A stretch of DNA of 64,000 bases, from assembly GCA_020184695.1 (NCBI GenBank), contig JAANOX010000248.1, positions 186,001-250,000 on the forward strand, given 5' to 3'. This document shows, piece after piece, positions 138-57,645 of this stretch; position 1 is the first letter of the stretch; every line of letters starts with the position of its first letter. The notes beneath the pieces were generated by a model. The model did not search any database, was not told the origin of the DNA, and saw only the letters and a program-made list of their open reading frames with translations. Made by a program: the position numbers and the translations under genes. This DNA comes from Histomonas meleagridis 2922-C6/04-290x (taxonomy: Eukaryota > Protista > Parabasalia).

Positions 138-2682
138 ATGACTGAGCCTTGTTCATCCTGCTTGAAATTCCTAATTGAGCTTGAGAAAAATATATTCAGT
201 TTAACAGAAGAAAACTTCAAGGCGTCCTCTAAAAAAGTATTGGAATTATTCGATTCAAACTATCCTTGTACATTTAATACTATTATAAGTAACATCGTTT
301 TTAATGCATTTTCATCACAAAAACAAGCATTTGATATTTCCATAAATTTTTTAAAAACACTTCAAACGAAAGAAGAAGAAATTAATCAAAATATAGTTAA
401 ATTAATGTCAATTTTTATCAAACGTATATCCAAAATTAACACACAAGAATCATATTATTTAATCGAGAAATTAATTGAACAAAATTTGGTTGATAAAAGT
501 ATTACCAAAAATATTCATTCAAAATATTTTGCTCATTATAAAACAGAAGAAGAAAACCAAAACAAAAATCATTCAGAATTTGAGTATGATAGAAATGATC
601 AAATAGAAAAATACTTTTTGGATAATTACAAAAAACTTTCAAAGAACAATTGGGAACTTCATAAGAAGTATGTTAAAGAAGGAGTTAATCCGAACGAAAT
701 AGCAAAAGTAATTCGATATGATGACATAGAAAACCTTCAAGAAATATCATCGCAAACAAATTTTGATTTTAACCAAACAATCGAACCATCACTTTATGAA
801 AGGTGTTCATTTATTAATCAAGAAAATGTTACATTAATTGATTATGCCGCATTCTTTGGATCAGTTAAATGTTTTAAATATTTACTTGTGAATAATGCAA
901 AAGTAGAAAACACAGGTAAATATGCAGTTGCAGGTAGAAATGAAGAAATCATTCATTTATGTGAACAATATCATTCATCATTTGAAGGTGCATATGAAAC
1001 AGCAATTGAATTTCATCAAAATGATATTTTTTATTATATTTATGAAAATAAATTAGAAAAAATACAATCAATGCCGAAAATGGATGAAGATAAAACAAAT
1101 GATTTGTTAAGTCTTTGTATTAAAAAAGATAATTATGAAATTTTAACATTTTTGGAAGAAAAAGGAATGAATTTTAATGTTGATAATATAAATGAAACAG
1201 CAATGAATGGAAATTTATATCTCGTTAAATATTTCCTTCAAAATAATCAAATACCAAAAAACATTTTGCATTTTGCTTCAGAATCAGGAAATGTTGAACT
1301 TGTGAAATATGTTGTGGAACAAAAAGGAATAGATGTTAATACAAAAACTATTCATTTGAATAATTTATAATATGTTTTAATAATTTGAAACAGCACTTCA
1401 TATAGCAGTTAGAAATAATAATATAGAAATAGTAAAATTACTTTTAGATAAAGGAATTGATGTTAATGCAAAAACTATTTATTTGAATAATTTAGAATAT
1501 GTTTTAATAATTTGAAATATGTTATAATAATTTGAAACAGCACTTCATATAGCAGTTAGAAATAATAATATCGAAATAGTAAAATTACTTTTAGATAAAG
1601 GAATTGATGTAAATGCAGAAAATATTTGTTTGAATAATTTTTTATATGTTTTAATAATTTGGAATATATTTTAATAATTTAAAATATGTTTTAATAATTT
1701 AATATATATTTTGATAATTTAGAATATGTTTTAATAATTTGAAACAGCACTTCATATAGCAGTTAGAAATAATAATATCGAAATCGTAAAATTACTTTTA
1801 GATAAAGAAGGAATTGATGTTAATGCAGAAACTATTTATTTGAATAATTTAGAATATGTTTTAATAATTTGAAATATGTTTTAATAATTTGGAACATGTT
1901 TTAATAATTTGAAACAGCACTTCATATAGCAGTTAAAAATAATAATATCGAAATCGTAAAATTACTTTTAGATAAAGAAGGAATTGATGTTAATGCAAAA
2001 AATATTCATTTGAATAATTTTGGATATGTTTTAATAATTTGGAACATGTTTTAATAATTTGAAACAGCACTTCATATAGCAGTTAGAAATAATAATATAG
2101 AAATAGTAAAATTACTTTTATATAAAGAAGGAATTGATGTTAATGCAAAAAATATTCATTTGAATAATTTTGGATATGTTTTAATAATTTGGAATATGTT
2201 TTAATAATTTTATATATGTTTTAATAATTTGAAACAGCACTTCATATAGCAGTTAAAAATAATAATATCGAAATCGTAAAATTACTTTTAGATAAAGAAG
2301 GAATTGATGTTAATGCAAAAAATATTCATTTGAATAATTTGGAATATGTTTTAATAATTTTATATATGTTTTAATAATTTTATATATGTTTTAATAATTT
2401 TATATATGTTTTAATAATTTAATATATATTTTGATAATTTAGAATATGTTATAATAATTTGAAACAGCACTTCATATAGCAGTTAAAAATAATAATATCG
2501 AAATCGTAAAATTACTTTTAGATAAAGAAGGAATTGATGTTAATGCAAAATATATTCATTTGAATAATTTGGAATATGTTTTAATATTTTAGAATATACA
2601 TTAATAATATTTGACTGCAATTCAAATTGCACGACAAGAAGGTTACACAGAAATAGTAAATTTACTTCGTGAAAAATTATAA
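138..2682 (+). CDS. Segmented DUF3447/ankyrin-repeat gene (locus A): continuous ORF 138-1370, then 8 ankyrin units separated by non-coding spacers
   Basis: ORF has trichomonad DUF3447-type motifs (IRYDDIENLQ, FDFNQTIEPSLYERCSF, LIDYAAFFGSVKCFKYLL). Units ETALHIAV(R/K)NNNIEIVKLLLDK(E)GIDVNA start at 1387, 1534, 1741, 1911, 2061, 2231, 2461; terminal unit LTAIQIARQEGYTEIVNLLREKL* at 2611-2682. The extent beyond 1370 assumes spacer removal. Confidence 0.8.
1350..2610 (+). repeat. Nested tandem repeat: 90/93-bp ankyrin unit alternating with arrays of a 20-bp minisatellite (consensus about GGAATATGTTTTAATAATTT)
   Basis: Direct reading. Spacer lengths 37, 57, 117, 77, 57, 77, 137, 57 nt all equal 17+20n. 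Confidence 0.95.
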
Positions 2683-3040: not shown

Positions 3041-5600
3041 TTATGAAATTGAACATGACACATTCGGTTCAGGAGGAATCACATTTGGGTTTATTTTTTC
3101 TCCCTTTTTTTCTTCCTCTTGTTGTCTTGTTCTTTCTTCATTTTCTTGTTGTCTTGTTCTTTCTTCATTTTCTTGTTGTCTTGTTCTTTCTTCCTCTTGT
3201 TGTCTTGTTCTTTCTTCCTCTTGTTGTCTTGTTCTTTCTTCCTCTTGTTGTCTTGTTCTTTCTTCATTTTCTTGTTGTCTTGTTCTTTCTTCATTTTCTT
3301 GTTGTCTTCTTCTTTCTTCATTTTCTTGTTGTCTTGTTCTTTCTTCCTCTTGTTGTCTTGTTCTTTCTTCCTCTTGTTGTCTTGTTCTTTCTTCATTTTC
3401 TTGTTGTCTTGTTCTTTCTTCATTTTCTTGTTGTCTTGTTCTTTCTTCATTTTCTTGTTGTCTTCTTCTTTCTTCATTTTCTTGTTGTCTTGTTCTTTCT
3501 TCCTCTTGTTGTCTTGTTCTTTCTTCCTCTTGTTGTCTTGTTCTTTCTTCATTTTCTTGTTGTCTTGTTCTTTCTTCATTTTCTTGTTGTCTTGTTCTTT
3601 CTTCATTTTCTTGTTGTCTTGTTCTTTCTTCATTTTCTTGTTGTCTTGTTCTTTCTTCCTCTTGTTGTCTTGTTCTTTCTTCCTCTTGTTGTCTTGTTCT
3701 TTCTTCATTTTCTTGTTGTCTTCTTCTTTCTTCCTCCTCATTGATAGCATCTTCATCATCTGATCCGTATTCTTCTTCTTTTTCTTCTTCCAAACGTTTT
3801 ATTTCATTTTCTAAATGTTTCTTTTTATTTACATATTCGTATGGTTCCTTATTTTGATTGTTTTTAATCCAATCTTTCATTTCACTAATTTTCATTTTAA
3901 TTTTATCTTTTTTATTATTTGATAAATTCTTATTCCTTAATTCAATTAAACATTCATTACAAAACCCATTAAATTCATCCATTGCTTTGAGTCTTTGTTT
4001 ATCCATTTCCTTTTTTTGTTGATATTCTATTTCAATTTTTCGTAACCTTTCTCTTTCATTTTCGGACAATCTTCCAGAGTTATTGTTAATTTTAATACTT
4101 CTCATACAACCTGATCTTATGTCTAACGCAGATACATATAATATTCCGTTTTCATTGATCGAAAACTTTACGTCAATGAATCTCTTTTCGTCTTTTTTCG
4201 CGAGTGCTACTGGTAAAATAATATCTCCGAGGTAATGATTCTCATTTAAATTCTCACTTTCACCTTCATAAACTTCGATTCTAACTTCTTGGTCATAATC
4301 ATTTTGCGGCTCATACTGCTTCTTATTTTCTGTTGGGATTTTTGTATTTTTTTTAAGAATTTCACTAAATTTACCATTCACATTTACTACAAGTGTAAGA
4401 GGTATAACATCATCAACAGAAATATCTTTTAAACTTTGTTCCCCTTTAATAATAGCAGCTTGGATCGCTGCGCCAGTTGCTACTGCTGTTCTTGGGTCAA
4501 TGTTTTTCCGGATTTTTCCAGGAAACATTTCTTCAAGTTTTTCTTGAATATATTTAATCGATGAAGAACCACCAATAAGTACAACATCAGTAACTTGCGA
4601 TTTTGGCATTTGAGCATCAATTAAAACTTTATTAACTCTATCAAATGTCGAATCAAAAAGATCTCGACATATCTCCACAAATTTTGTTCGCTTGATTTCT
4701 TTAAGAATTCCATGCCCTGGAAATAATCCGGAGGTATTTAATGTAGCTGTAATTTTAGATGATAATGTTGTTTTTACTACCTCACATTTGTTTTTTAATG
4801 TACTTAATGTGCGAGGTGAATTTCGTGGATCAATTCCATAGAATTTTATGATTTTCTTCGAAAAATAATCAACAAGTCGATTATCAAAATCTTGTCCACC
4901 TAAATGAGTATTACAGGCTGTGACAAGAACTTTGAATTTCCCACCTTCTACTTCAAGTAATGAAACATCGAATGTACCACCTCCAAGATCATATATTAAG
5001 ATATAACGTCTTTCACTAAATCTCTTCTTATAACCATATGCATAGCTGCGGCTGTTGGTTCATTAATAATACGTAAAACATTTAGACCTGCAATAGTTGC
5101 AGCATCTTTGGTGGCTTGTCGTTAGCCATCATTAAAATATGCTGGAACTGTAACAACAGCATCTTTTATCTTGAACTCAATCTGACCTTCCGAAATTTCC
5201 TGAATACGTCTAAAATCTTGGATGAGATTTGTTCAGGATATAATTGTTTGATTTCATCATTAACTTGAACTTGAATCAATGGTAAACCTGTTTTATCTTT
5301 GACTACTTTGAAAGGCCACTTTGGAATATCTTTTTTTATCTCTTCAAAACTACGGCCTAGCATACGTTTGGAATCATAAATAGTATTGGCTGCATCTTCA
5401 GAAATCCCATTGGCTGCCTCTTCGCCAACAATTATATTATCACCATCAAATCTAACGATGGATGGTATTTACTCTTTGCCAATAAAGTTCAAAAGATAAT
5501 CAATTTCTCCTTGGATATAAACAGCACCACATGTAAATGTTGTGCCAAGATCTATTCCAAGAGCAAGTTTCGAAAAATCGATTTGTTTTCGTTTCCTCGT
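3041..5600 (-). pseudogene. Cytosolic-type Hsp70 homolog, disrupted in its 5' part, with a repetitive charged C-terminal tail
   Basis: Minus strand reads [73 protein letters not shown]. In-frame TAA at 5122-5124 and 5469-5471, plus frameshifts near 5040 and 5435. No clear start ATG. Frame open from about 5040 to 3041. Confidence 0.85.
3112..3737 (-). repeat. Tandem 24/27-bp repeat encoding QQE(N)EERTR, about 24 copies
   Basis: Visible TCTTGTTGTCTTGTTCTTTCTTC(A/C)T.. units; explains the overlapping repetitive ORFs in other frames. Confidence 0.95.
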
Positions 5601-5719: not shown

Positions 5720-7803
5720 ATGTGTTTCCAATTTTTAAGCAATATACAAAAAACAATTAGGGAGTTAAAAGAAGAAAATATTGATGAATCGATTGAAATA
5801 GTCAAAGCATTATATGATTCAAATTTCCCAAATTCTTTTTATATAATTTTAGCTCAAACAATTTTTTCAGTGATAATATCACATATAAATAACATTGATT
5901 TATATTTTCAATTTCTGAATGAAATCCAAAATATAAATGATCATTTTAATGATATTTTTATTCAATATCTTCTTCATTTAGATTCTCAAGAATCTAAATA
6001 TTTAATTGAAATGATGATTAATTTAAATCTTGCTGACATTGATCTTGTTCAAACTAAAAAGTCCCTTTATTTCGCACATTATAAAACGAATGTTGATATT
6101 GATAGGCTAATGCATAACCAGAATATTCCATTTGTTGAAACATTTAAAGACAATATTAAAAAACTTTCAAAAAATGATTGGGAACTTCACAAACGATTAA
6201 TTAAAGAAGGAATTAACTCAGATGAAATATCAAAAATAATTCGAAATGATGAAATAGGAAATCTTTTAGAAATATCATCGCAAACAAATTTTAATTTTAA
6301 TCAGACAATCGAACCATCACTTTATGAAAGATGTTCATTTGTTAATCAATATAATGTTAGATTAATTGATTATGCAGCATTCTTTGGATCAATTAAGTGT
6401 TTTAAATATTTACTTATGAATGGAGCTTATATAATTTTAACAGGTAAATATGCAGTTGCAGGCGGAAATTTAGAGATAATTCATTTATGCGAACATAATC
6501 ATTCATCATTTGAAGGTGCATATGAAGTTGCAATTGAATTCCATCGAAATGATATATTTTATTATCTTTATGAAATTGATATTATTAAATATATAAATTT
6601 AGAAGATTTAGCAAAGAATTGTATTTTATATAATAATTATGAAATTTTTCTGTTTTTAGAAGAAAAAGGTTTAAATGTTGAAGATGAATTAATCATTGAA
6701 GTAATAGAAAGTGGTAATTTATATCTTTTAAAGCATTTACTTGAAAAAAATGAATTGCCAAAAGAAATTTTAGTTTCAGCTATAAAATCAAGAAATATTG
6801 AAATTGTTCAATATGTTATTGATCTAAATGGGTTTTATAATGGAGATAAATATATATTTTTTATTATATTTAAGATTTGTTTTAAATAATTAATTTTTCA
6901 ATTTTTTAAATGGAATTTAATATTATTATTTAATACGCCATTTTTAATTGCTTGTAAACAAGGTTCCGTTGAAATTGCAAAATTGCTTCTTAAAAAAAAG
7001 TATAGTAAAATAGGTGAGAAAAATATTTCTAGAATGAATTTAATATAAATTTTTAATTTTTCGTGTTTAAAATATATATTATTTGCTAATGGACTTTATT
7101 TAGCATCAAAATATGGTCATATTAAAATGATTAAATTCCTTCTTAGGCATAAAATTGAAATTGCACTTAATTTCTATATAATCTTTTCAAAGATAATTTT
7201 TATTTTTTGATATTCATATTTTATTTTTCATGATTATTTTTCATGTTTTTTTCACCTCTTATGATTGCAATATTTTATGGTCATATAAAAGTTATAAAAA
7301 TATTACTCAAAGAAGGAATTTATATAAATGCTATTGAATTTTATTTAAAAAATTGTATGATTTAATCTAATTTTAACATATAGAAGACCACATCGTCATT
7401 ATATCCTTGCACCATTATTTCTTGCAACTGAAAATAATAATGCAAAAATAGTCAAATTACTTCTCAAGCAGAAAGGAATTGATGTTAATATTAAAAATTT
7501 TTATTTGTTTTATTTAATATTTATTTTAATAATTTGAAATTTCAAAATATTATTTGGAAATGATTTGAATAATATAAAACAGCACTTATGATAGCATCTG
7601 AAAAAGGTTACACAGAAATAGTTAAATTACTTCTTGAACATGAAGGAATTGATATTAATGCTAAAAATATTTATTTGTTTTATATAAAATTTATTTTTCA
7701 AAATAATATTTGGAAATTATTTAAATTATTTGACACAGCATTTACATTCGCATCTAAAAATGGTCATGAGGAAATAATTCAATTATTTCTTGAGCACAAA
7801 TAA
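5720..7803 (+). CDS. Segmented DUF3447/ankyrin gene (locus B): ORF 5720-6889 plus 6 spacer-separated ankyrin units
   Basis: DUF3447 motifs in ORF. Units NTPFLIAC.., ANGLYLAS.., SPLMIAI.., APLFLAT.., KTALMIAS.., DTAFTFAS..EHK* ending at 7803. Confidence 0.75.
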
Positions 7804-19400: not shown

Positions 19401-22328
19401 ATGGAAAAATCAAGCAATATGCAAATGCTGTATATGCTTGAGAATATATTGTTAAATATAAATAAAGAAAATATAGAATCTTCAATTGAAAAAACCATTC
19501 TTTTATTTGATAAAAATTATCCTTCATCTTTTAATAACATTATATGTTTATTAATTTTTTCATTATTTTCTTCACGAAAACAAGAAGCAGATATATATCT
19601 AAATTATTTACAATTATTAAATAACAAAGAAAAAGAAATTAATCCCAAAAATAATATCATTGATTTATTTTGTGAATTTATATGTAAAAAGAAAAAACAA
19701 GAATCATTTTATTTATTAGAAAAGATGATAAAACAACATATGGTTGATTCAAGTGTAACTGAAAATTTTACTTCTAAATATTTTGCACATTACAAAACTA
19801 AAAAAATTGGGAGTAAAATGTATTATGGCGATCCATTTTGTAGTGACTTTTTATATAACATTGAGAAACTTTCTGAAAATAATTGGGAACTACATTTAAA
19901 ATATATAAATGAAGGAGGTAATCTGTTAGAAATAACAAAAGTAATTCGTAATGATGATATTGGAAAATTACAAGAAATATCATCACAAGAAAACTTTGAT
20001 TTTGATCAAAAGATTAAACCATCACTATATGAAAAATTTTCTTTTATTAACAAAGAAGGTATATCATTAATTGATTATGCAGCTTTTTTTGTCTCAATAA
20101 AATGTTTTAAATATTTAATGTTAAATAATTGTAATCTTTATAATACAAGTAAATATGCAGTTGCAGGTGGAAATTTAGAAATAATTAAACTTTGTGAACA
20201 AAAGGATATTTCATTTAGTGGTGCATTTAAAACAGCAATTAAATTCCATAAAAATGATATATTTCATTATCTATATGAAAATATGTTTAATAAAATTAGT
20301 GATGAATTTGTTCCAATAAAAGTTCATAAGATATTAAATCGATTAAAATTTTCTTTAAATGATAAAATATTAAATTTTTTAGGTAAACTTTGTATTAAAA
20401 GTAATAACTATGAAATTCTTTCATTTTTAGAAAAAGAAGGAATGAAAGTTACTGCTTATGTTATTAATAAAGCTGCAAAAGTAGGGAATTTATTCCTGAC
20501 TAAATACTTTTTTGAGAAATATCATGTTCCAAAAAATATCTTAGCTGATGCTACACAATCAGAAAATATAGAAATTATTAATTATATTCTTAAACAAGAT
20601 GGAATCCTTGTTAATGCTAAAAGTTTTTCTTCATTTATTTTGATATTTATTTATATGTTTTTAATGTTTTAATATATATTTTGATGTTATTTTTTATTAT
20701 TTGATGTTTCACTTGTTTATGCAACTGAAGTTGGTAATATAGAAATCGTGAAAATTTTATTGAATTTACCTGATATTAATGTAAATACTAGAGGTAAGAT
20801 TTTTTTAGATAATTTAATATTTTATATTTCTACTTGGTGTTTATTTTAATATATTAAAGCAGCACTTATTTTTGCAACATTGAATAACAATATTGAAATT
20901 ACTAAATTACTTTTAAATCATAAAGATATAGATGTTAATAAAAAACATATTAATCTCAATTATTTATGATTTCATCAATTTGTATAATGTTTTTTTAAAT
21001 GCTTTAAAACTCCATTATTTTTTGCAATCCAACATAATTATCCAGAAATTTTTAATTTACTTCTGAATCACAACAAAATTGATTTAAATATAACCGGTAT
21101 TATATTAATTTTTTTGAAGTTTGTTTAAACTATTTAATGTTTTAGAATAATATTTAGAATTTATTTCATCTTTTTAGAACAGTTCTTATAGAAGCATGTA
21201 GAAAATCTCGTGAAGAAATGGTTAAATTACTTCTTGAACGAAAAGAAACCGATATAAACGTAAATGCAAGAGATGTTAATTAATTTTTATTAAATTTAAA
21301 TATAACATTTTGATATTTCATAAATATATTTGGAAATTCTTCAAATTATATTATACAGCACTTATGCATGCAATTAATGGAAGTTATGTAAAAATAATAA
21401 AATTACTTCTTCAAGTCGAAGGAATTGATGTTAATGTTAAAAATATTTTTTTGTTATATATAAAATTTGTTTATTTGTTTAATATTTTTTAGTTTTATAT
21501 GGAAATCAATCAAATTATTTTCAACAGCACTTATTTTAGCAGTTGAAAGAGGTTGTCTTAATATAGTTAAGTTACTTCTTGAGAAAAATGGAATTGATGT
21601 TAATATTAAAAATATTTTTATTGTTTTATTTGTTATTTATTTAACCTATATAAAATTTCAAAATAAAATTTGCTAATTATCTAAATTATTTAAATCAGCC
21701 ATAACTATAGCAATTGAACAGAAAAATTTAAATATATTTAAAGTACTTCTTGATCATAAAGGAATTGATATTAATTCTACAGATATTTTTTTGTATTATT
21801 TAAAGTATTTTATAATAATTTAAAATCTCAAAATAAAATTTGGAGTTTCTCCAAATATTTTAATACATTACTTATGATAGCAGTCAAAAAAGGTACTACT
21901 GATTTTGTTAAATTAATTCTTTTGAAAAATTATAAAGATATTAATAAGACAAATGTTTATTTGTTTCGTTTAATGTTAACATTAACATATTTCATGTTAC
22001 AAAAAATTATTTGGGAATTATTTTAAACATTTAAAACAGCACTTATGAAAGCAGTTTCAATTGGTAACAAAGAAATTGTGGAGTTACTTCTTGATCAAAA
22101 AGGAATTGATTCAAATATTGTGGCAGTTGTTTCACTGTATCTTGTGTTGATTTTATTATTATAATATTTCAAAATATTATTTGGAATATATTTAAATCAT
22201 TCGACACAGCGTTTTCTATTGCAGCTTCAAAATCTGCTCTGTTTATTTTGGGATTACTTATAAAAAGAAATGAAGGAAATGAAAAAACGTCAAATTTTAC
22301 AAGAGCATGTTTGGTTATACCAAAATAG
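19401..22328 (+). CDS. Segmented DUF3447/ankyrin gene (locus C): ORF 19401-20672 plus 10 spacer-separated ankyrin units
   Basis: DUF3447 motifs. Units DVSLVYAT, KAALIFAT, KTPLFFAI, RTVLIEAC, YTALMHAI, STALILAV, KSAITIAI, NTLLMIAV, KTALMKAV, DTAFSIAA..IPK* (stop 22326-22328). Confidence 0.8.
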
Positions 22329-38785: not shown

Positions 38786-41700
38786 CTACGCTTTTTCGGT
38801 TTCATCCTTTTTCTCTTTCTCTTCGTTATGTCTATGCATTAACATGCAAGGGAAAAGGAAATGCCCAGCGCCGCAGTCACAAAATGCCGGACCACTACCT
38901 GACTGCGTTACGTCGTGGCCCTTGTGACATACCTTAGCGCATTCCTCGCAAAAACAGAAATTAATTCCTGAGTTATTCATGCAAGTTCTGCACCTATAAT
39001 ATCTATTGTGGTTTACCATTGTGTAACCAGTTTGCTCGAATGTGCAATGTCCAGGTATGAAAATGTCTCTGCGATTACCGGAATTCATCATCATTTCACT
39101 ATTTTGTTTTCTTCTTGCGATCAAATCAATAATTTCTTTCTTGTTCATTAAACCAGTTTCATTAAGAATTGTTTTCTCATTGTTATCTTTAATGTTGACA
39201 TCAATTTCCTTTTGTTCGAGTAACAATTTCACAATATCATTATGACAATTACGAGAAGCCTTTAATAAAGCAGTATCGAATTAACAAAATAAATTCCAAA
39301 TATTAATATGAAACAGTAAATCATATATATTAACATTAGTATCTCTTGCATTAATATCGATACCATTTTGTTCAAGAAGTAAATTAGCGATTTCGCTGTA
39401 ACCTAATTCAGACACAATCATTAAAGGTGTTTTAAATGAATATAATAAATTCCAAATGATATTTTGATATATTAAATCAATCGAATAAATAGTTTTAACA
39501 TTAACATCAATTCCTTCTTGTGTAATAAGTATTTTAACTATAACAACATAACAATTTAATACCGCTAATACAAATGCTGTATTTCGAAGTATTATAATAA
39601 AACTTCAGAACATTTAAATAAATATTTACACTTAAGCTATTAATACCTTTTTGTTTGATGAATAAGTCAATGATTTCTGCTTGTCCATTTAATAAACATA
39701 ATGTAAAAACAGTTTTAAATAATTCGGAAAAACTTCGAAAAGTCATATAAATGAACATCACTTGTATTGATTTCGATTCCTTCTTTTTCAAGTATTAATT
39801 TAATGATATCGATATGACTCTTTGAAGCTGCATGCATTAATGCTGTTTTATATATAATAAATGAACACCAAATATTTGAGTTAAACTTCAAATAATGAAG
39901 TTATATATTATCTCTTGCATTAATATCAACATTATTTTGGTCAAGAAGTAATTTAACAAGATCAGTATGACCATTTAATGCTACAATCATTAAAATTGTT
40001 AAAAATCACATAAAGAAACACCAAATATTATAAACAATTTCTATATTATTCAAATAGATATTATCTTTGATATTAATATCAACATTATCTTGTTCAAGAA
40101 GTAACTTAACTATATCCGGTTTATCATTTTTCAATGCTAAAATAAGTGCTGTCTTAAATACATTAAATAATTTCCAAATTAAATTTTGAATTTTCATTTG
40201 ATAAAAACAAATTCTAAATATAACAAATAAACATTTTTAATGTTAATATCAATTCCTTCGTGTTCAAGTAATAATTTAACTATTTCTGTACGGCCGAATT
40301 GTGCTGCATAAATTAATGCTGTTTGAAATAAAATGAATAAATTTTAAATATTTTTTAATAACATTATATTGACAAAACTAATATTAAGTAAAACAAATAA
40401 ATATTTTTAGCATTAACATCAATTCTTTCTTTTTCTAAAAGTAATTTAGTAATTTCTACACTTCCATTATACGCTGCAGACATTAAAGCTGTATAAAATC
40501 AACGAAATGAATTCCAAATATTATTTTGATATTTGAAATCAACAAAATCGATTTTATCTTTGTTGTTAACATCAATTCCATTTCGTTCAAGTAACATTTT
40601 CGCGATATCATTATTACAACATTTAATAGCCACAGAAAGAGCTGTATCAAAACTAACAAAAAAACTCCAAATCTTTCAAACAAATATTAAATCATTATAA
40701 CAAACATAAAATATTACATATAAATATCATTTGTTACATTAATATTAAGTTCTCCATGTTCAAGAAGTAACTTAACTACATCAGTATAACCATAACGAGC
40801 AGCAAAAAGTAATGGTGTGAAAAACATTTATAATAAACATCAAACATTTTTTAGAAACACGAAAAATACCTAAAAAACATCACCTCTCACATTAACATCA
40901 ACATTTTTATTCTGAAGAATTAACTTAGCGATTTCTTCGTAACCATTTCTTAATGCTAAAATAAGTGCTGTATCATATTTCTAAAATAAATTCCAAAAAT
41001 AATTCAAAAACTTTATGTAATTAAAACAAATTCTACATATAACAAATAAACACTTACTCCATTAACATTAATTCTTTCTTGTTCAAGTAATAATTTTGCA
41101 ATTTCTATTTCATTCTTTTTGATTGCCATAATAAGTGCTGATTCAAATAATAGAAACAAATTCCAAATTTAACATTGAAATTTTATATCATTAAAATTAA
41201 CTCTAAATATAACTTATAAACATTTGTTTGATTTATATCAATTCCTTCTTGTGCAAGAAGTAATTTTACTGTTTCCAAATAACCTTTTTTAGATGCTTTC
41301 ATTAATGATGTTTCAAATGATTTATATAAACATTAAATTATATAATCAAATTTTATGATTTTGTAAGTTTATGTTAATTCCTTTTTTCTCAAGTAAATCG
41401 AGCATTTGTTGATTACATCTTTTCAATTCATTAATAAGTGATTCTTGAAATCGTATAAATAAATTTCAAATATAATAAAGAAATTCGAAATGTTGAAATT
41501 ATACTTTAAACATTATAAATATATCTTATCAAAATTATTTGTTAGATTTTCTTGTTCAAGAAGTAACTTAAGGATTTCATTATGACGACTTTCCAATGAT
41601 TTCATAAGTGTTGATTTAATTATCAGGATTTAAGGATTCTGTGTGTCATATAATTTCATTGTATTTTCAATCGATAACTTGAGGTTTTCTTGGTTAAGAT

Positions 41701-51781: not shown

Positions 51782-52912
51782 ATGGCTGAAGACGAAGTTC
51801 AAACATTAGTTATTGATAATGGTTCTGGTATGTGCAAGGCTGGTTTCGCTGGTGATGAAGCACCACGCTCAGTTTTCCCATCCATAGTTGGTCGTCCAAA
51901 GTATGTCCAAACAATCGCAGGAGGACAAAACAAGGATACATATGTTGGTGATGAAGCATGCGCTAAGGCAGGTATCCTTATCCTCAAGTACCCAATTGAA
52001 CACGGTATCGTTACCAACTGGGACGATATGGAAAAGATCTGGCACCACACATTCTACAACGAATTACGTGTTGATCCAGCTGAACATCCAGTTCTTCTTA
52101 CAGAAGCCCCAATGAACCCAAAGGCCAACCGTGAAAAGATGATCCAACTCCAATTCGAAACATTCAACGTTCCAGCATTCTATGTTGGTATCCAAGCCGT
52201 TCTTTCCCTTTACTCATCTGGTCGTACAACCGGTATCGTTTTCGATGCAGGTGATGGTGTTTCCCACACAGTTCCAATCTACGAAGGCTACTCCCTTCCA
52301 CACGCCATCATGCGTATCAACCTCGCCGGTCGTGATCTCACAACTTATCTTCAAAAGATCCTTAACGAACGTGGCTACACCTTCACAACATCCGCCGAAA
52401 AGGAAATTGTTCGTGATATCAAGGAGAAGCATGCATATGTTGCTCTTGATTTCGACGAAGAAATGAACAAGGCCGCCACAACATCCGAATGCGACATCTC
52501 ATACACACTTCCAGATGGCAACGTCATCACCATCGCCAACGAGCGCTTCAGGTGCCCAGAACTTCTTTTCAAGCCACACTTCAATGGCTTCGAATTCGAA
52601 GGTATTGACCAAACCCTCTTCAACTCCATCATGGCATGCGATATCGATGTCCGTAAGGATCTCTACGCTAACATTGTTCTTTCCGGTGGTACCACAATGT
52701 TCGAAGGTCTCCCAGAACGTATGGAGAAGGAAATGGTCCGCCTCGCACCACCAACAATGAAGATCAAAGTCGTCGCCCCACCAGAACGTAAGTACGCAGT
52801 TTGGATCGGTGGCTCCATCCTCGCATCACTCGCTACATTCCCACAAATGGTTATCACACGTGACGAATACAACGAAGCTGGTCCAGGAATTGTCCACCGC
52901 AAGTGCTTCTAA
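51782..52912 (+). CDS. ACT: Actin
   Basis: Full-length actin ([47 protein letters not shown]); strongly biased, highly-expressed codon usage. Confidence 0.99.
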
Positions 52913-53141
52913 ACAATCGCACCTTATTTTTTGTTTGAATACTCGATACCGTGTGATTTAATGAAACAGAATCTCAATTTTTTTTAATTATTTTATCAAA
53001 CAAAATCATGAAAACTTAATATTATGCAAAATAATGCACTATATATTCAAATATTTAAAAAATCTTCTTTATACTAAATTTATCATATCGTTTGGCCACC
53101 CCGAATTTAACGTTTTCTTGACGAATTCAAAAAATAAAAGT

Positions 53142-55820
53142 ATGCAGAAAAAATCAAATAGGGAATGCTATAAAAAAACATCATATCAATTCATGGAGCA
53201 ACTTGAAAATATTATATTTTCTTTAAGTGATGAAAATATCGGAGCAGCAATTCAATCAACATTAAATTTATATGATGTCCGTTTTTCATTTTCATATAAT
53301 CTTATTGTATCCCAATTAGTTTATTCTTCCTTTGTTTCTTTTGTAAATAATGAAAGTAGATGTTTTTTATATTTAATAGGAATTAATGAAAAAGAAAAAG
53401 AAAAGAAAAAAATTATAAATATATTTTATTGGTATCTTCTCCGATTGCAATCACAAGAATCAAAGTTTCTGCTTGAAAAAATGCTAGAACAGAATATGAT
53501 AGATGAAATCGAAAAGAAAAATGATAATTCTTTTTCTCATCAAAATTTATCTGATCAAACCAATAAAAGTAAAAACACTCAAAAATCTTCAAAAGATGAA
53601 TCAGAACTAAATAAAAAACAAACGCATGAAGGAGTTAATCAGTCTATTGTCGCTAAAGCAATTCGAAATGATGAAATAGAAAAACTTCAAGAAATTTCAA
53701 CAGAAACAAATTTCAATTTTAACCAAATAATTGAGCCATCACATTACGAAAAATGCACATATGTAAATAAAGAAAATGTTTCATTAATTGATTATGCAGC
53801 ATTTTTTGGGTCAATCAAATGTTTTAAATATTTATTATTAAATAATTCCAATATAGCAAATGCAGGTAAATATGCAATTGCAGGTGGAAATTCTGAAATT
53901 ATTCATTTATGCGAACAAAATCATTCATCATTTGAAGATGCTTATGAGATAGCAATTGAATTTCATCGGAATGATATCTTTCATTATTTGTATGAAAATA
54001 ACATTATCGAAATCAAAGATAAGATAAAACTTGGGAAAAAATGTATTAAATATAATAACTATGAACTTTTTTCATTTCTGGAAAAAGAAGGAATGAAAAT
54101 CAATGATTCCTTAATTAATGAAGCAGCAAGAAATGGTAATATATTCCTTACATTATGTTTTCTTGAGGAAAATAAATTACCTGATAATATTCTCGTTTCT
54201 TCTGCTGAATCAGGAAACATTGAACTTTTTAAATATATTCTTGAACAAGAAGGAATTGATATAAATGTTAAAAATGTTTTTTTAATGAATATAAATTTTA
54301 TTTCTTTAATTTCATGTTAATTAATCATATATGGATTTTATATTGTTTTTTTAGAACTGCACTTATGATGGCATCTGAAAAAAATGATACTGAAATTGTG
54401 AAATTATTGCTAGAATTAAAAGGAATAGATGTCAATGCTAAAGATGTTTTCTGGTTTGATTAAATTTTTGTTTTATATATTTGAAATTTCAATACAATAT
54501 TTGGAATTTAAATATATCTGATGAAACAGCACTTATTATTGCTTCTTCAAAAGGGAATATTGAGACAATCAAATTACTTCTTCAACATAAGAAAACTGAT
54601 ATTAATTTGAAGAATATTTTTTTGTTAATTATAAAGTTTATCATTAAAATAAGAAATTTCAAATGTATAAATGGTGTTTTACTAATTAATTCACAACACC
54701 GCTTATGTTGTCATGCATCTCAGGAGCAAATGATATTGTTCGATTACTTCTTGATCAAAAAGGAATTGATGTTAACTTAAAAAACATTTTTTTATTTCAA
54801 TTAAAGTTTATTTTACTGAAATAATGTTAAATATTAATTTTCGGTGTTTATTTTTACTATTTTGGACAAGTATAATGCTTGCATGTCGATATAACCATAT
54901 TGAAATTGTAAAAATGTTAGTTCTTAAAAAAGGTATAGATGTTAATTTGAAAAACATTTTTTAATATAATTTTTTGTTTATTCAAAATATTTAATGTTAA
55001 CAAAATACATTTAATATTTATTTCATTTTCTTTGGACAGCATTAATGTATGCATGTAATAACTCAAATCCTGATATGATAAAATTACTACTCGAAAAGAA
55101 AGGAATAGACCTCAGTACAAAAAATATTTATTTAATTAAATTAATATTTACAAATGATTTTTGGTGTATATAACCAAAATTTGGAATTTTTTCAACAAAT
55201 TTTCAATGGCACTAATGTGGGCATGTTCAAATGATCAACTTGAAATTGTTCAACTTTTAATTGAACGAAAAGTTAGTGTTAATGTTAAAGATATTTATTT
55301 ATATTTATTTAATGTTTCATTATATTTTTTTATGTTTCAAAATTATATTTGGTGTATTTTTATATTATTTAAAACAGCTTTAATGTATGCATGTACAAAA
55401 GAAAATATTCCAATTATAAAATTACTTTTAAGTCAAAAAGGTATTGATATTAATGCAACTGATGTTTTTTAATGAGATTTAATGTTTTAAAATGATTCTT
55501 AATGTTCTTTTCGTTGATTAACTGCTTAAATTTAATTTTTGGTATTTGTTGAATTGTTTTTGGACAGCTTTAATATATGCTTGTTCAATAGGTAACACTC
55601 AAGTGGTAGAATTACTTCTTGAACAAAAAGGAATTGATACAAATATAAGAGGAATATATTTAAATTATTTAATGTTATTTTTATGTTTCTGATGTTTGAA
55701 AATATAATTTGGAATATTATAAAAGTTATTCGTACAGCTTTAATGTGGGCAAGCAAATTTGGTTACGAAGATATTGTTAATTTAATACTAGAAAAAGAAA
55801 AAATTGTAAATCAGACATAA
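53142..55820 (+). CDS. Segmented DUF3447/ankyrin gene (locus E): ORF to 54320 plus 9 spacer-separated ankyrin units
   Basis: DUF3447 motifs. Units RTALMMAS, ETALIIAS, TTPLMLSC, WTSIMLAC, WTALMYAC, SMALMWAC, KTALMYAC, WTALIYAC, RTALMWAS..NQT* (stop 55818-55820). Confidence 0.8.
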
Positions 55821-55949
55821 ATTATATAAAAATTTGTATTATATAAATATTATGTATTTAAAAAATTAAATTTTGTATATTTTATCTAATGTGCGCGATT
55901 AATAAATTTCATCATATATTTTTTGTGATGATGTCTTTAACCTTAAATA

Positions 55950-57645
55950 TTAAATGGAGATTTGGCATTTTACTAAAAGTAAAAATAATTTTGATTCATT
56001 TGTAATCAAACAATGAATATATATGAATAAAAAATTAACATTGTTACGAAAACGAACAATAAAAATTATAAGAATTATTATAAATACAATCGCAACAATT
56101 ATAACACAAACAATAATGATAACCATATTTGTTTGATTTTCATTATTATCATAAAAAATGTGAAATAATCCGAATAAAACAAAAAATATGTTGAATACTG
56201 AATAACTGTATAATGATAACATAAAAATCCAGTAAATAAATAAGTAAAAGAAGAAGATAACACCTTATTGAAACTATATATGTATTGGAAATAAATGAAA
56301 AGTAAATGATACAGAAAAGTTAATGAATATGAAAATGTTGTCTAAATTCATATGAATTCTCTAATACAAATGAATTCGATTTTGTAAATGCATTGGATGA
56401 AGTAAATGGAAATGATTTCATAAACGTATTTGAATTAATCAAAGCATTTGATTTAGAAAATGTATTAGAATTTGTAAAAGTATTTGATTTAGAGAATGTA
56501 TTAGATTTTGTAAAAGTATTTGATTTAGAGAATGTATTAGATTTTGTAAAAGTATTTGATTTAGAGAATGTATTAGAATTAGTAAAAGAATTTGATTTAG
56601 AGAATGTATTAGAATTAGTAAAAGAATTTGATTCAGGAAATGTATTTGATTTTGTAAAAATGTTCGATTTAGAAAATGTATTTGAATTCGTATATGCTGT
56701 AGAACATCCTGATACAGTTCCAAAGGTAATACTAAATATTTTAAATGCGTTACTTAGATATGTTTTTAACACCATAATTTCAATTTTATCTGTAACTATA
56801 TAAAAAGCAATATCACTAATTGTAGGTTCTGTTTCCCCATAAAAGTAAACACATTTAAGTTCATTGCACCAATTAAATGCGTAATCATTAATTATTTTTA
56901 CATTTTCTCCAATGCAAACAGTAGACAAAGAAATACAATATGAAAATAATCCATATGAAATAATTGATATTTTATTGGAAATTGTAAATGCTTTTAGATT
57001 AGTACAAAGACAAAATGTAAAATTACCAAAATCTATAATATTTTTACAATTAATAATTTCTTCTAAATTACCAGAAGAATAAAATGAAGATTCTCTAGTA
57101 GCAGTAACTGTTGATGGAATTTCATATGTTATACTTTCTTTACATGCTGGATAAAAGTAGATGGTTTGAATAGTTTTATCATAAAGAACTCCATCATCAT
57201 TCAAATTACAAAAATATGGATTATTCTCAGATATCTTAAAAAACTTAATTTTCTCACATAGTATAATAACACATTCACCAAATGAAATTACTGAATCAGG
57301 AAATGTTATGTTCTGCAAGAAATTACTATTTTGAAATGAACGATCTCCAAATATTTGAACACTTTTTCCAATAACAATTGATTCTAAATTATAACAAGAT
57401 GAAAATGCATAAGATTCAATTGTCGTAACAGAATCACCAATGATAGCTGAAAGCAAAGAACTCCATTCCGAAAAAGTACTTGATGGAATTGTATCAACAT
57501 TTTCATCTATAATAACAGCTGTAGAGTATTGCGATATTTCATCAAATTCATTAGAATTAGTAATTGTAAGTGTATCATCAGAAAATGTTTCTCTTGAAGG
57601 TATACAAAACATAATAAATATTAAAGGAAGGAATTTATTTTTCAT
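55950..57645 (-). pseudogene. BspA-like LRR protein: ORF 56320-57645 intact through the stalk, TM region out of frame
   Basis: Signal peptide, TpLRRs, SNTF(S/T)K stalk; frame break near 56345 before the TTFSYSLT segment homologous to the other BspA; TM VIIIVCVIIVAIVFIIILIIFIV lies in ORF 55950-56222. Confidence 0.75.
56445..56690 (-). repeat. 18/36-bp tandem repeat encoding the SNTFSKSNTFTK stalk
   Basis: Repeated TTTGATTTAGAGAATGTATTAGATTTTGTAAAAGTA on the + strand. Confidence 0.9.

Follow-up and report, generated by a model that had tools for sequence, protein, structure and literature searches.

The window analyzed here is a 64,000-nt stretch of Histomonas meleagridis 2922-C6/04-290x (contig JAANOX010000248.1, positions 186,001 to 250,000) that is AT-rich (20-36% G+C) and gene-dense, uses the standard genetic code and carries long intron-free open reading frames (ORFs). 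Five of its genes, designated loci A to E, encode ankyrin arrays interrupted repeatedly by short spacers, and gene E on the plus strand, with its ATG at 53142 and its TAA stop ending at 55820, is the one described in detail below. It is very probable that these are working H. meleagridis ankyrin genes, in which three loop codons of each beta-hairpin are each a 3-nt exon lying between 17-nt elements; the arrangement is a real, expressed and apparently undescribed gene architecture. A first-pass annotation, made from the letters of the window alone, had already pointed out the spacers. Its spacer positions and lengths at locus E were exact (54276-54352 through 55654-55730; in order, 77, 77, 77, 77, 77, 77, 78, 97 and 77 nt), and the other four loci that it named are present as well. 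It had treated each spacer as a single unit, however, and overlooked an inner period of 20 nt (17 + 3).

The N-terminal part of gene E comprises 378 codons of DUF3447/ankyrin type from ATG 53142, with Pfam matches to DUF3447 and Ank. The RNA data used were assembled contigs from four RNA-type runs (X1-X4), which were aligned to 52900-56100. Contigs of three runs started at 53129 and were unbroken through 53689. The TCA at 53127-53129, located 13 nt 5' of the ATG, is initiator-like, and we take it to resemble the trichomonad initiator. Because the contigs start at 53129, on this TCA, a longer ORF from 53034 is probably not used. Upstream of 53129, the contigs carry letters that are not in the genome (18 in X2 and X3 contigs, 1793 in X1 record 1), which could represent adapter, a chimeric assembly or an upstream exon. 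Exact look-ups of the N-terminal ORF, in either reading, returned no gene on record, and a protein search with RNA-derived peptides spanning two exons gave no candidate.

Downstream of this part, each spacer of locus E consists of n+1 elements of 17 nt with n single-codon exons between them, which gives the 20-nt period: 77 = 4x17 + 3x3, 97 = 5x17 + 4x3, and the 78-nt spacer has one 18-nt element. Set in rows of 20, the 97-nt spacer reads GAT/17/AAT/17/AAT/17/ACT/17/GGT/17/TGG-ACA-GC, where 17 stands for an element. The features of gene E are listed below, with a slash in the decoded residues marking the place of an element.

53129..54275, plus strand: first exon of gene E; transcript start near 53129; ends at the first hairpin, ..G-I-D-I-N-V-K-N
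54276..54352, plus strand: spacer 1, 77 nt; elements 54276-92, 54296-312, 54316-32 and 54336-52; micro-exons AAA (54293-5), CAT (54313-5) and GGA (54333-5); decodes K-N/K/H/G/R-T-A-L
54353..54445, plus strand: ankyrin exon, 31 codons; Pfam Ank 2.7e-08; an exact 93-nt piece of contig X3 rec17
54446..54522, plus strand: spacer 2, 77 nt; elements 54446-62, 54466-82, 54486-502 and 54506-22; micro-exons AAT, GAA and GGA; decodes K-D/N/E/G/E-T-A-L
54523..54615, plus strand: ankyrin exon, 31 codons; Pfam Ank 1.5e-06; within X3 rec17
54616..54692, plus strand: spacer 3, 77 nt, four 17-nt elements; micro-exons AAA (54633-5), GAA (54653-5) and GGT (54673-5); decodes K-N/K/E/G/T-T-P-L; parse plus one RNA edge
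54693..54785, plus strand: ankyrin exon, 31 codons; Pfam Ank 4.7e-07
54786..54862, plus strand: spacer 4, 77 nt, four elements; micro-exons AAA, AAT and GGT; decodes K-N/K/N/G/W-T-S-I
54863..54955, plus strand: ankyrin exon, 31 codons; Pfam Ank 2.8e-08; an exact piece of contig X2 rec10
54956..55032, plus strand: spacer 5, 77 nt, four elements; micro-exons TTT (54973-5), AAT (54993-5) and AAT (55013-5); decodes K-N/F/N/N/W-T-A-L
55033..55125, plus strand: ankyrin exon, 31 codons; Pfam Ank; exact pieces in four runs
55126..55202, plus strand: spacer 6, 77 nt, four elements; micro-exons AAT, GGT and GGA; decodes K-N/N/G/G/S-M-A-L
55203..55292, plus strand: ankyrin exon, 30 codons; Pfam Ank; exact pieces in four runs
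55293..55370, plus strand: spacer 7, 78 nt; an 18-nt first element (55293-310), then three of 17 nt; micro-exons AAT, TAT and GGT; decodes K-D/N/Y/G/K-T-A-L
55371..55463, plus strand: ankyrin exon, 31 codons; exact pieces in X2, X3 and X4
55464..55560, plus strand: spacer 8, 97 nt, five 17-nt elements; micro-exons AAT (55481-3), AAT (55501-3), ACT (55521-3) and GGT (55541-3); decodes T-D/N/N/T/G/W-T-A-L
55561..55653, plus strand: ankyrin exon, 31 codons; Pfam Ank 1e-07; X4 rec24 reaches 55635
55654..55730, plus strand: spacer 9, 77 nt, four elements; micro-exons AAT, GAT and GGA; decodes I-R-G/N/D/G/R-T-A-L; parse only
55731..55820, plus strand: last ankyrin exon, 29 codons, and the TAA stop

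Decoded in this way, with 37 elements taken out and 28 micro-exons retained, the gene E protein has 682 residues in one continuous frame.

Junctions were predicted from the 17+3 parse alone, as the end of a piece, the number of leftover letters and the restart, and were compared with the RNA contigs. The predictions 54955/8/55032, 55126/8/55203, 55293/7/55370 and 55463/11/55560 were all found in RNA contigs, as were the single predicted edges 54353, 54445, 54616 and 54862, and the element register of locus E is set by the RNA. Contigs that skip spacers consist of exon pieces of 93-95 nt with 0 mismatches, up to four exons in succession. Specifically, X3 rec17 restarts precisely at 54353 behind spacer 1, and its genomic match stops at 54616, at the start of spacer 3, where a tail of 101 letters follows that equals 8 letters plus the 93-nt next exon. 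X2 rec10 restarts at 54862 behind spacer 4 and runs 54955, 8 letters, 55032 across spacer 5, the predicted letters being TTTAATAA. Across spacer 6, the order 55126, 8 letters, 55203 was seen in contigs of all four runs. At spacer 7, the match of spliced contigs stops either at 55293 or, after a further 5-nt stretch that includes one mismatch, at 55298, and restarts at 55370; in the latter form, 2 of the 7 predicted letters are left over. In X1 record 6, the 183 letters past 55298 equal 2 + 94 + 11 + 76. Across spacer 8, the 11 letters that the RNA contigs hold between 55463 and 55560 are AATAATACTGG, the same as those predicted, and the predicted spliced junction peptide of spacer 2 is DNEGETALIIASSK. 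The 17-nt units are removed from RNA and single codons are left, a statement that we make with high confidence. Operationally the elements are introns, since they are in the DNA, are absent from the RNA, and the exons are rejoined colinearly, as judged from contigs of four runs at one locus.

The strain of the RNA runs differs from the assembly. Its retained spacers show substitutions at 54518 and 54520 and a one-letter deletion at 55303, while the listed exon pieces differ from the assembly in one letter, as is expected if the constraint on the spacers concerns only element length and ends. Position 55303 is polymorphic: one letter is missing there in all X3 and part of the X4 spacer-containing contigs, which turns the first element of spacer 7 into one of 17 nt, and the element stays at 18 nt in the X2 spacer-containing contigs. 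The same difference between exons and spacers speaks against an artefact combined with decay, in which dead tandem pseudogenes would merely look processed through reverse transcriptase (RT) template switching or misassembly across the 20-nt repeats. The spacers are indeed period-20 repetitive, the kind of template prone to RT jumps, and the contigs are k-mer assembled. However, a jump between direct repeats deletes multiples of 20 nt and not four stretches of 17 nt with codons left between them, identical junctions occur in four runs, the products keep the frame without exception and restore x-x-G-x-T-A-L, and every exon is over the Pfam Ank threshold, so that we consider this explanation most improbable.

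Partly processed RNAs were also found. X3 rec17 reads up to 54445, then 2 letters, then from 54482 on, that is, elements 1-2 of spacer 2 are gone and elements 3-4 are retained, and the spacer downstream of this half-processed one is fully processed. X4 rec24 reads up to 55463, then 6 letters, then from 55521 on, with elements 1-3 of spacer 8 gone and elements 4-5 retained, and X3 record 18 retains elements 3-4 of spacer 5. In addition, one contig of the RNA runs (55264-55399) is unspliced. Such mixed states in one molecule argue for stepwise, unit-by-unit removal from RNA, and against both an element-free DNA copy and contaminating DNA. As a separate observation, the substitutions of X3 rec17 (C>T at 54518, G>T at 54520) lie within the retained fourth element of spacer 2, which ends atypically in ..CTGAT, and retention of this element may be tied to a particular allele or a weak element.

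The mixed molecules bear directly on the origin of the element-free RNA. It could have been copied from element-free DNA, either from unsegmented twin copies or after somatic excision of the kind known for internal eliminated sequences (IES), with the segmented copies being silent; a minor element-free DNA form may exist, the libraries may hold DNA, and unsegmented ankyrin paralogs (..AKDKDGETAL..) are clearly expressed. Such an origin is nevertheless very unlikely, given that X3 rec17 and X4 rec24 combine removed and retained elements of one spacer with exact exons on either side. Furthermore, DNA runs contain 0.99 of the words sampled from 54276-55730 as against 0.23-0.29 in RNA runs, where about 0.40 is expected if exon-internal words alone survive, and the loop codons in the RNA equal in-phase genomic spacer triplets letter for letter. 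The 17-nt length is strict in 166 otherwise diverged elements, which indicates selection on the segmented copies themselves, and to our knowledge neither nuclear dimorphism nor DNA elimination is known in parabasalids. The word shares and the partly processed RNAs likewise leave DNA rearrangement, which the first-pass annotation had listed among its options, unsupported. Runs X8 and X9, which are typed 'DNA?' and come from the same samples as the genome runs, contain 0.28-0.35 of the array's words, and they may be RNA libraries because this share resembles that of the RNA runs.

Translational recoding, in which ribosomes hop over the elements or shift frame on element-retaining transcripts, would be compatible with the abundance of spacer-containing RNA and with the finding that just 38 of the 173 elements in the window carry a stop codon in the incoming frame. 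Against this, about 37 consecutive 17-nt hops would be required per protein, no T4 gene 60-like pairs of take-off and landing codons or hairpins were found, and recoding is unnecessary since element-free RNA exists; the ribosomal bypass that had been suggested earlier is therefore not needed. We regard recoding as scarcely credible, and even when it is taken together with the artefact described above, very little probability falls to the two.

Several points weigh against the reading of these genes as arrays of removed 17-nt elements and kept codons. The RNA evidence consists of k-mer contig assemblies from runs whose library type was inferred, and it covers one locus (E). Spacer 9 is without a listed junction contig, and spacers 1-4 have one confirmed edge apiece. 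Unspliced and partly spliced forms are abundant (word depth in spacer 7 of 193 vs 346 in X2 and 39 vs 53 in X4), which may reflect inefficient processing or DNA in the libraries. The stop-free state of the micro-exons is partly a product of the parser. In locus A, moreover, the decoded loops are longer by 1-6 residues, an unusual feature in a folded ankyrin stack, and some of its 20-nt units could perhaps not be used as parsed.

To see what the kept codons encode, gene E was compared with the Pfam Ank profile (PF00023). Ten tested pieces scored 21.4-34.1 bits against a gathering cut-off of 21.1. Nine repeat exons align to profile positions 3-5 through 31-32 of 33, and the last exon to 25; the micro-exons fill positions 33, 1 and 2 (Gly), which are absent from the large exons. 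Consistently, the third micro-exon is Gly in 14 of the 19 regular spacers of the whole window. The kept codons rebuild the ankyrin beta-hairpin, x-x-G followed by x-T-A-L, and unsegmented ankyrin paralogs in loose ends of contigs from the same runs carry ..A-K-D-K-D-G-E-T-A-L.. at the same site and with the same length. Decoded repeats most often have 34 residues, and an exon that is one codon longer is accompanied by one micro-exon fewer, indicating that elements were lost or gained singly while protein length was held.

These results also bear on what the first-pass annotation had made of the units and their joins. The units between the spacers of locus E (29-31 codons) are coding, as it had held, each being open and above the Ank gathering score. 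Its view that something other than GT-AG splicing removes the spacers agrees with the RNA contigs; removal of a spacer in one piece does not, since the RNA shows several elements per spacer. The join K-N-I-F-x-T-A-L with 2-5 linker residues that it had put forward is contradicted by RNA that keeps codons, e.g., K-D/N/E/G/E-T-A-L, and the 'F' of its F-x-T-A-L is not a residue, being the TTT that ends the last 17-nt element. The check that it had proposed, namely to map RNA over the spacers free of a GT-AG constraint, was run here and yielded contigs that skip elements with in-frame junctions.

The other four loci were parsed in the same way. With a Viterbi parser that has codon and element states, all five loci decode to continuous ankyrin arrays. 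Note that a low-penalty parse adds false elements outside the arrays (e.g., 53334-53378, contradicted by RNA contigs), and only in-array elements were counted.

1350..2610, plus strand: locus A, 32 elements, 9 spacers, 1 to 6 single-codon exons per spacer
6854..7731, plus strand: locus B, about 18-20 elements
20625..22202, plus strand: locus C, 38 elements, 10 spacers
39278..41524, minus strand: locus D, 48 elements, 15-16 spacers, upstream of a zinc-finger C-terminal exon

Altogether, the five ankyrin genes of the window contain 173 elements, of which 166 measure 17 nt, 6 measure 18 nt and 1 measures 16 nt. A spacer usually has four elements (range two to seven) with three single codons between them (range one to six), and among the 120 single-codon exons of the window G (33), N (26), K (14), R (13) and E (10) lead. 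The 20-nt units of locus A, 2-7 per spacer, are near-identical, which points to a recent tandem duplication of a unit made of element plus codon. At locus B, one spacer (7660-7740) has a 9-nt micro-exon (K-I-Y) in place of three single codons, and locus D has 32-codon exons followed by just two micro-exons, with the repeat length staying at about 34. Chains of elements (at least 3 at 20-nt spacing) are confined to the five loci and none appeared in five shuffles of the window. Tandem Repeats Finder independently reported period-20 arrays inside the spacers. Isolated elements joining two open frames of at least 80 codons were not found elsewhere in the window.

The elements follow the consensus RTTT-N9-ATTT and lie in phase 0. 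Their 5' ends are AT in 97, GT in 55, TT in 9 and AA in 9 of the 173 cases, the commonest four-letter starts being ATTT (53), GTTT (36) and ATAT (30); their 3' ends are TT in 135 and AT in 25, and AG and AC do not occur there. The ends are less strictly defined than this consensus implies, because several elements of locus B have atypical 5' ends (TTCT, GATA, GATT). In base composition, elements are 58% T and 6% G, and micro-exons 22% T and 27% G. The (A/G)TTT starts, the lack of a frame-restoring GT..AG or AT..AC pair and the lack of the trichomonad 3' motif (0/173) had all been read correctly in the first-pass annotation. Its impression that the junctions are ambiguous was not borne out, since in 56 of the 173 elements the boundary cannot be slid by even one base. 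A candidate with one intron per spacer, whether of GT-AG or AT-AC type or with shifted ends, was tried and rejected, as no such ends exist and the RNA has 7-11 letters per spacer.

Among the candidate machineries for removal, a spliceosome that operates near the smallest intron size it can handle, and with less strict requirements for the ends, comes close to an even chance in our estimate, without reaching it; a minor share is left to mechanisms other than those considered here. One sharp minimal length is a property of ultra-short intron lineages (Stentor coeruleus, 15-16 nt, as cited in PMC13644364; Trichomonas vaginalis type B, 23-26 nt, PMC12316389), the elements have a purine at +1 and U-rich filler, and they are gained and lost singly, like introns. 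Moreover, A is enriched at -9 to -7 (maximum 64% at -7) and at -4 (80%), the former being near the trichomonad branch A at -8 (PMC12316389). What counts against the spliceosome is that no AG end occurs among 173 elements and that AT starts (97) exceed GT starts (55), that 17 nt is too short for the 5' motif (6-7 nt) and the 3' motif (12 nt) of trichomonads combined, and that the branch motif CTAA is rare (4/173). The missing AG and AC ends, the absence of known trichomonad splice motifs from the elements, the length fixed to the nucleotide and the W/R sequence at both junctions in 119 of the 173 elements would instead fit a dedicated cut-and-ligate system, with an endonuclease at both U/R borders, an element-binding protein or ribonucleoprotein (RNP) as the ruler and an RtcB-type or tRNA-ligase-type ligase. 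We nonetheless rate such a system as unlikely, though far from negligible: no fold was found (spacer mean z 0.0; lone elements, mean minimum free energy (MFE) -0.04 kcal/mol), a 3-nt exon released by cuts on both sides would escape if nothing kept it in place, and such a density in mRNAs is without known precedent. The comparison of spacer folds with shuffles (mean z 0.0) likewise gave no RNA structure as a recognition signal.

Comparison with known systems gave partial likenesses. Features of U2-type GT-AG introns are lacking in most elements, with a GT start in 55/173 and an AG end in 0/173. U12-type introns have AT..AC ends, the 5' sequence ATATCCTT and the branch site TCCTTAAC; here 0/173 elements end in AC, a count of ends, the full 8-nt motifs not having been searched separately. 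Bigelowiella nucleomorph introns are about 18-21 nt, and both these and Stentor introns are canonical GT-AG, scattered over all genes and flanked by exons of ordinary size. The elements resemble them in having one sharply fixed ultra-short length and in that retention gives in-frame stops or frameshifts, whereas they differ in their non-canonical ends, in their restriction to one loop of one repeat family and in the 3-nt exons between them. Euglenid non-conventional introns vary in length and juxtapose the exons through a stable helix formed between the intron ends; they share with the elements a place in nuclear pre-mRNA and the lack of GT-AG, but RUUU and AUUU are not complementary and no helix of this type is predicted. 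Ciliate IES, T4 gene 60 and the byps of yeast mitochondria are short AT-rich inserts that interrupt frames densely. IES are excised at the DNA level, and bypass elements persist in the mRNA; in contrast to both, the elements of Histomonas are retained in DNA and lost from RNA, and retention in mature mRNA, the feature of translational bypass, is at odds with the RNA contigs that are free of elements. Micro-exons of animals are rare, have long canonical introns on either side and depend on enhancers (SRRM3/4), unlike the micro-exons seen here, which number three or four in each repeat and 120 over the 64 kb and have 17-nt elements on either side. In a preprint (bioRxiv 10.64898/2026.05.13.725022), 3-nt exons are the lower limit reported for animal micro-exons. 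The likeness to animal micro-exons and recursive splicing lies in the splicing of 3-nt exons and the stepwise joining to a growing upstream exon, the accepted means of overcoming the limits of exon definition. Endonuclease-ligase splicing (tRNA, archaeal bulge-helix-bulge, HAC1/XBP1; PMC5435141) is similar in that the intron is short (26 nt in XBP1) and lacks GT-AG, but it needs a defined fold and occurs once per RNA, whereas here no fold is predicted and dozens of elements occur per RNA; spacers are no stabler than shuffles, so a fold of the bulge-helix-bulge, tRNA or HAC1/XBP1 type was not seen.

A further likeness is to trichomonad introns, which have 5' GYAYGY or GTWYWD and 3' RCTAACACAYAG or TCTAACH1-2AACAG and are at least 23 nt long (PMC12316389). 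Among the 17-nt elements, a loose 5' pattern of these type A/B motifs occurs in 32/173, the 3' motif in 0/173 and CTAA in 4/173. Type-B introns (T. vaginalis and T. stableri, 23-26 nt; PMC12316389) come from the same phylum, are very short and of a narrow length class, have U-rich filler, lie in repeat-protein genes among others, and are removed from mRNA. They differ in having GT..AG ends and a branch site fused to the 3' motif, and a gene has no more than one or two of them, whereas the Histomonas elements have 97 AT starts, are 17 nt long and stand in tandem, up to 48 per gene. If the spliceosome does the work, the elements would be an extreme variant of spliceosomal introns and not a new kind.

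Regarding mechanism, we propose that each 17-nt U-rich element (RUUU...AUUU) would be an independent excision unit, because partly processed RNAs have lost some elements and kept others, and because elements are gained or lost singly in evolution at a repeat length of about 34 residues. Removal probably runs 5' to 3', given that only 3' elements remain in all three intermediates. Each micro-exon would then be joined first to the long upstream exon, which would solve the problem posed by exons of 3 nt. The arrays may lengthen or shorten as 20-nt units, each made of an element and a codon, are duplicated in tandem, and each duplication or loss of 20 nt would mean exactly one loop residue more or fewer after processing. 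Going further, we tentatively suggest, as something more doubtful than not, that Histomonas and the source of the matching metagenome scaffolds described below possess a hitherto undescribed excision system independent of spliceosomal splice-site rules that takes out exact 17-nt U-rich units one by one and handles single-codon exons, with the 20-nt module as an evolvable loop cassette.

The same arrangement was found outside the window. In a second H. meleagridis assembly (GCA_020186115.1, sequence L002), a paralogous locus has the same layout, e.g., GAT/17/AAT/17/AAT/17/GGA/17/CAA-ACA; it is from the same species as the window and is thus not cross-genus evidence. At L002:5343-6420, between a DUF3447 N-terminal ORF and the segmented ankyrin array, lies a transposase-like frame, guessed from the residues ..HPPYSPDIAPSDFWFFG.., which may be a transposon insertion into a segmented ankyrin gene. 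Three metagenome scaffolds of the European Nucleotide Archive (ENA) from three samples (L001, L125, L126) have N-terminal domains about 50% identical to that of gene E and share its architecture, e.g., AAC/17/TAT/17/AAT/17/GGG/17/ATG-ACA. In Tritrichomonas, two loci downstream of short DUF3447 genes, which are no survey (L127 of T. foetus, L128 of T. musculus), showed no element chains. A metagenome scan with a degenerate three-element pattern returned at least 120 stretches that proved on screening to be chance matches, the pattern being too weak. One of these stretches, a 20-nt T-rich minisatellite in non-ankyrin metagenome DNA (L111, Ga0268261_10061573), mimics the element chain score, indicating that a period of 20 alone is not diagnostic.

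In the published genome of H. meleagridis (43 Mb, 28% G+C), introns are scarce, with a maximum of one per gene and 573-638 annotated, and the paper is silent on 17-nt elements (PMC8529796). Set against this number, 173 elements in five genes, together with the lack of a gene on record for the N-terminus of gene E, imply that a large protein family is probably truncated or missing in proteomes. The shortest trichomonad intron in the searchable literature is 23 nt, and the T. vaginalis intron pipeline discards junctions without canonical motifs (PMC12316389); mappers and pipelines that filter by motif in this way would discard the junctions of 17-nt elements. Tandem 17-nt elements or arrays of single-codon exons were not described in the searchable literature, among it papers on the genomes and introns of Histomonas, Tritrichomonas and Trichomonas; this literature includes few subscription journals, so that the absence is not proof. 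Two limits of gene structure are broken together here, by intron-short inserts without canonical ends and by single-codon exons as the rule, and the genes offer a tractable case of site definition with minimal sequence information and a fixed ruler. The 20-nt module suggests that loop length could evolve by minisatellite-like slippage with the frame intact. A parasite-specific RNA processing step would also be of practical interest for blackhead disease of poultry, for which there is no treatment or prophylaxis (PMC8529796).

Two further tandem repeats were observed in the window. At 3117-3733, a 27-nt repeat of about 24 copies with 93% matches lies inside long ORFs that overlap on both strands (3041-4678 on the minus strand), and it is probably a low-complexity coding repeat. 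At 56426-56692, a 36-nt repeat of 7.4 copies lies within the ORF 56320-57645 on the minus strand.

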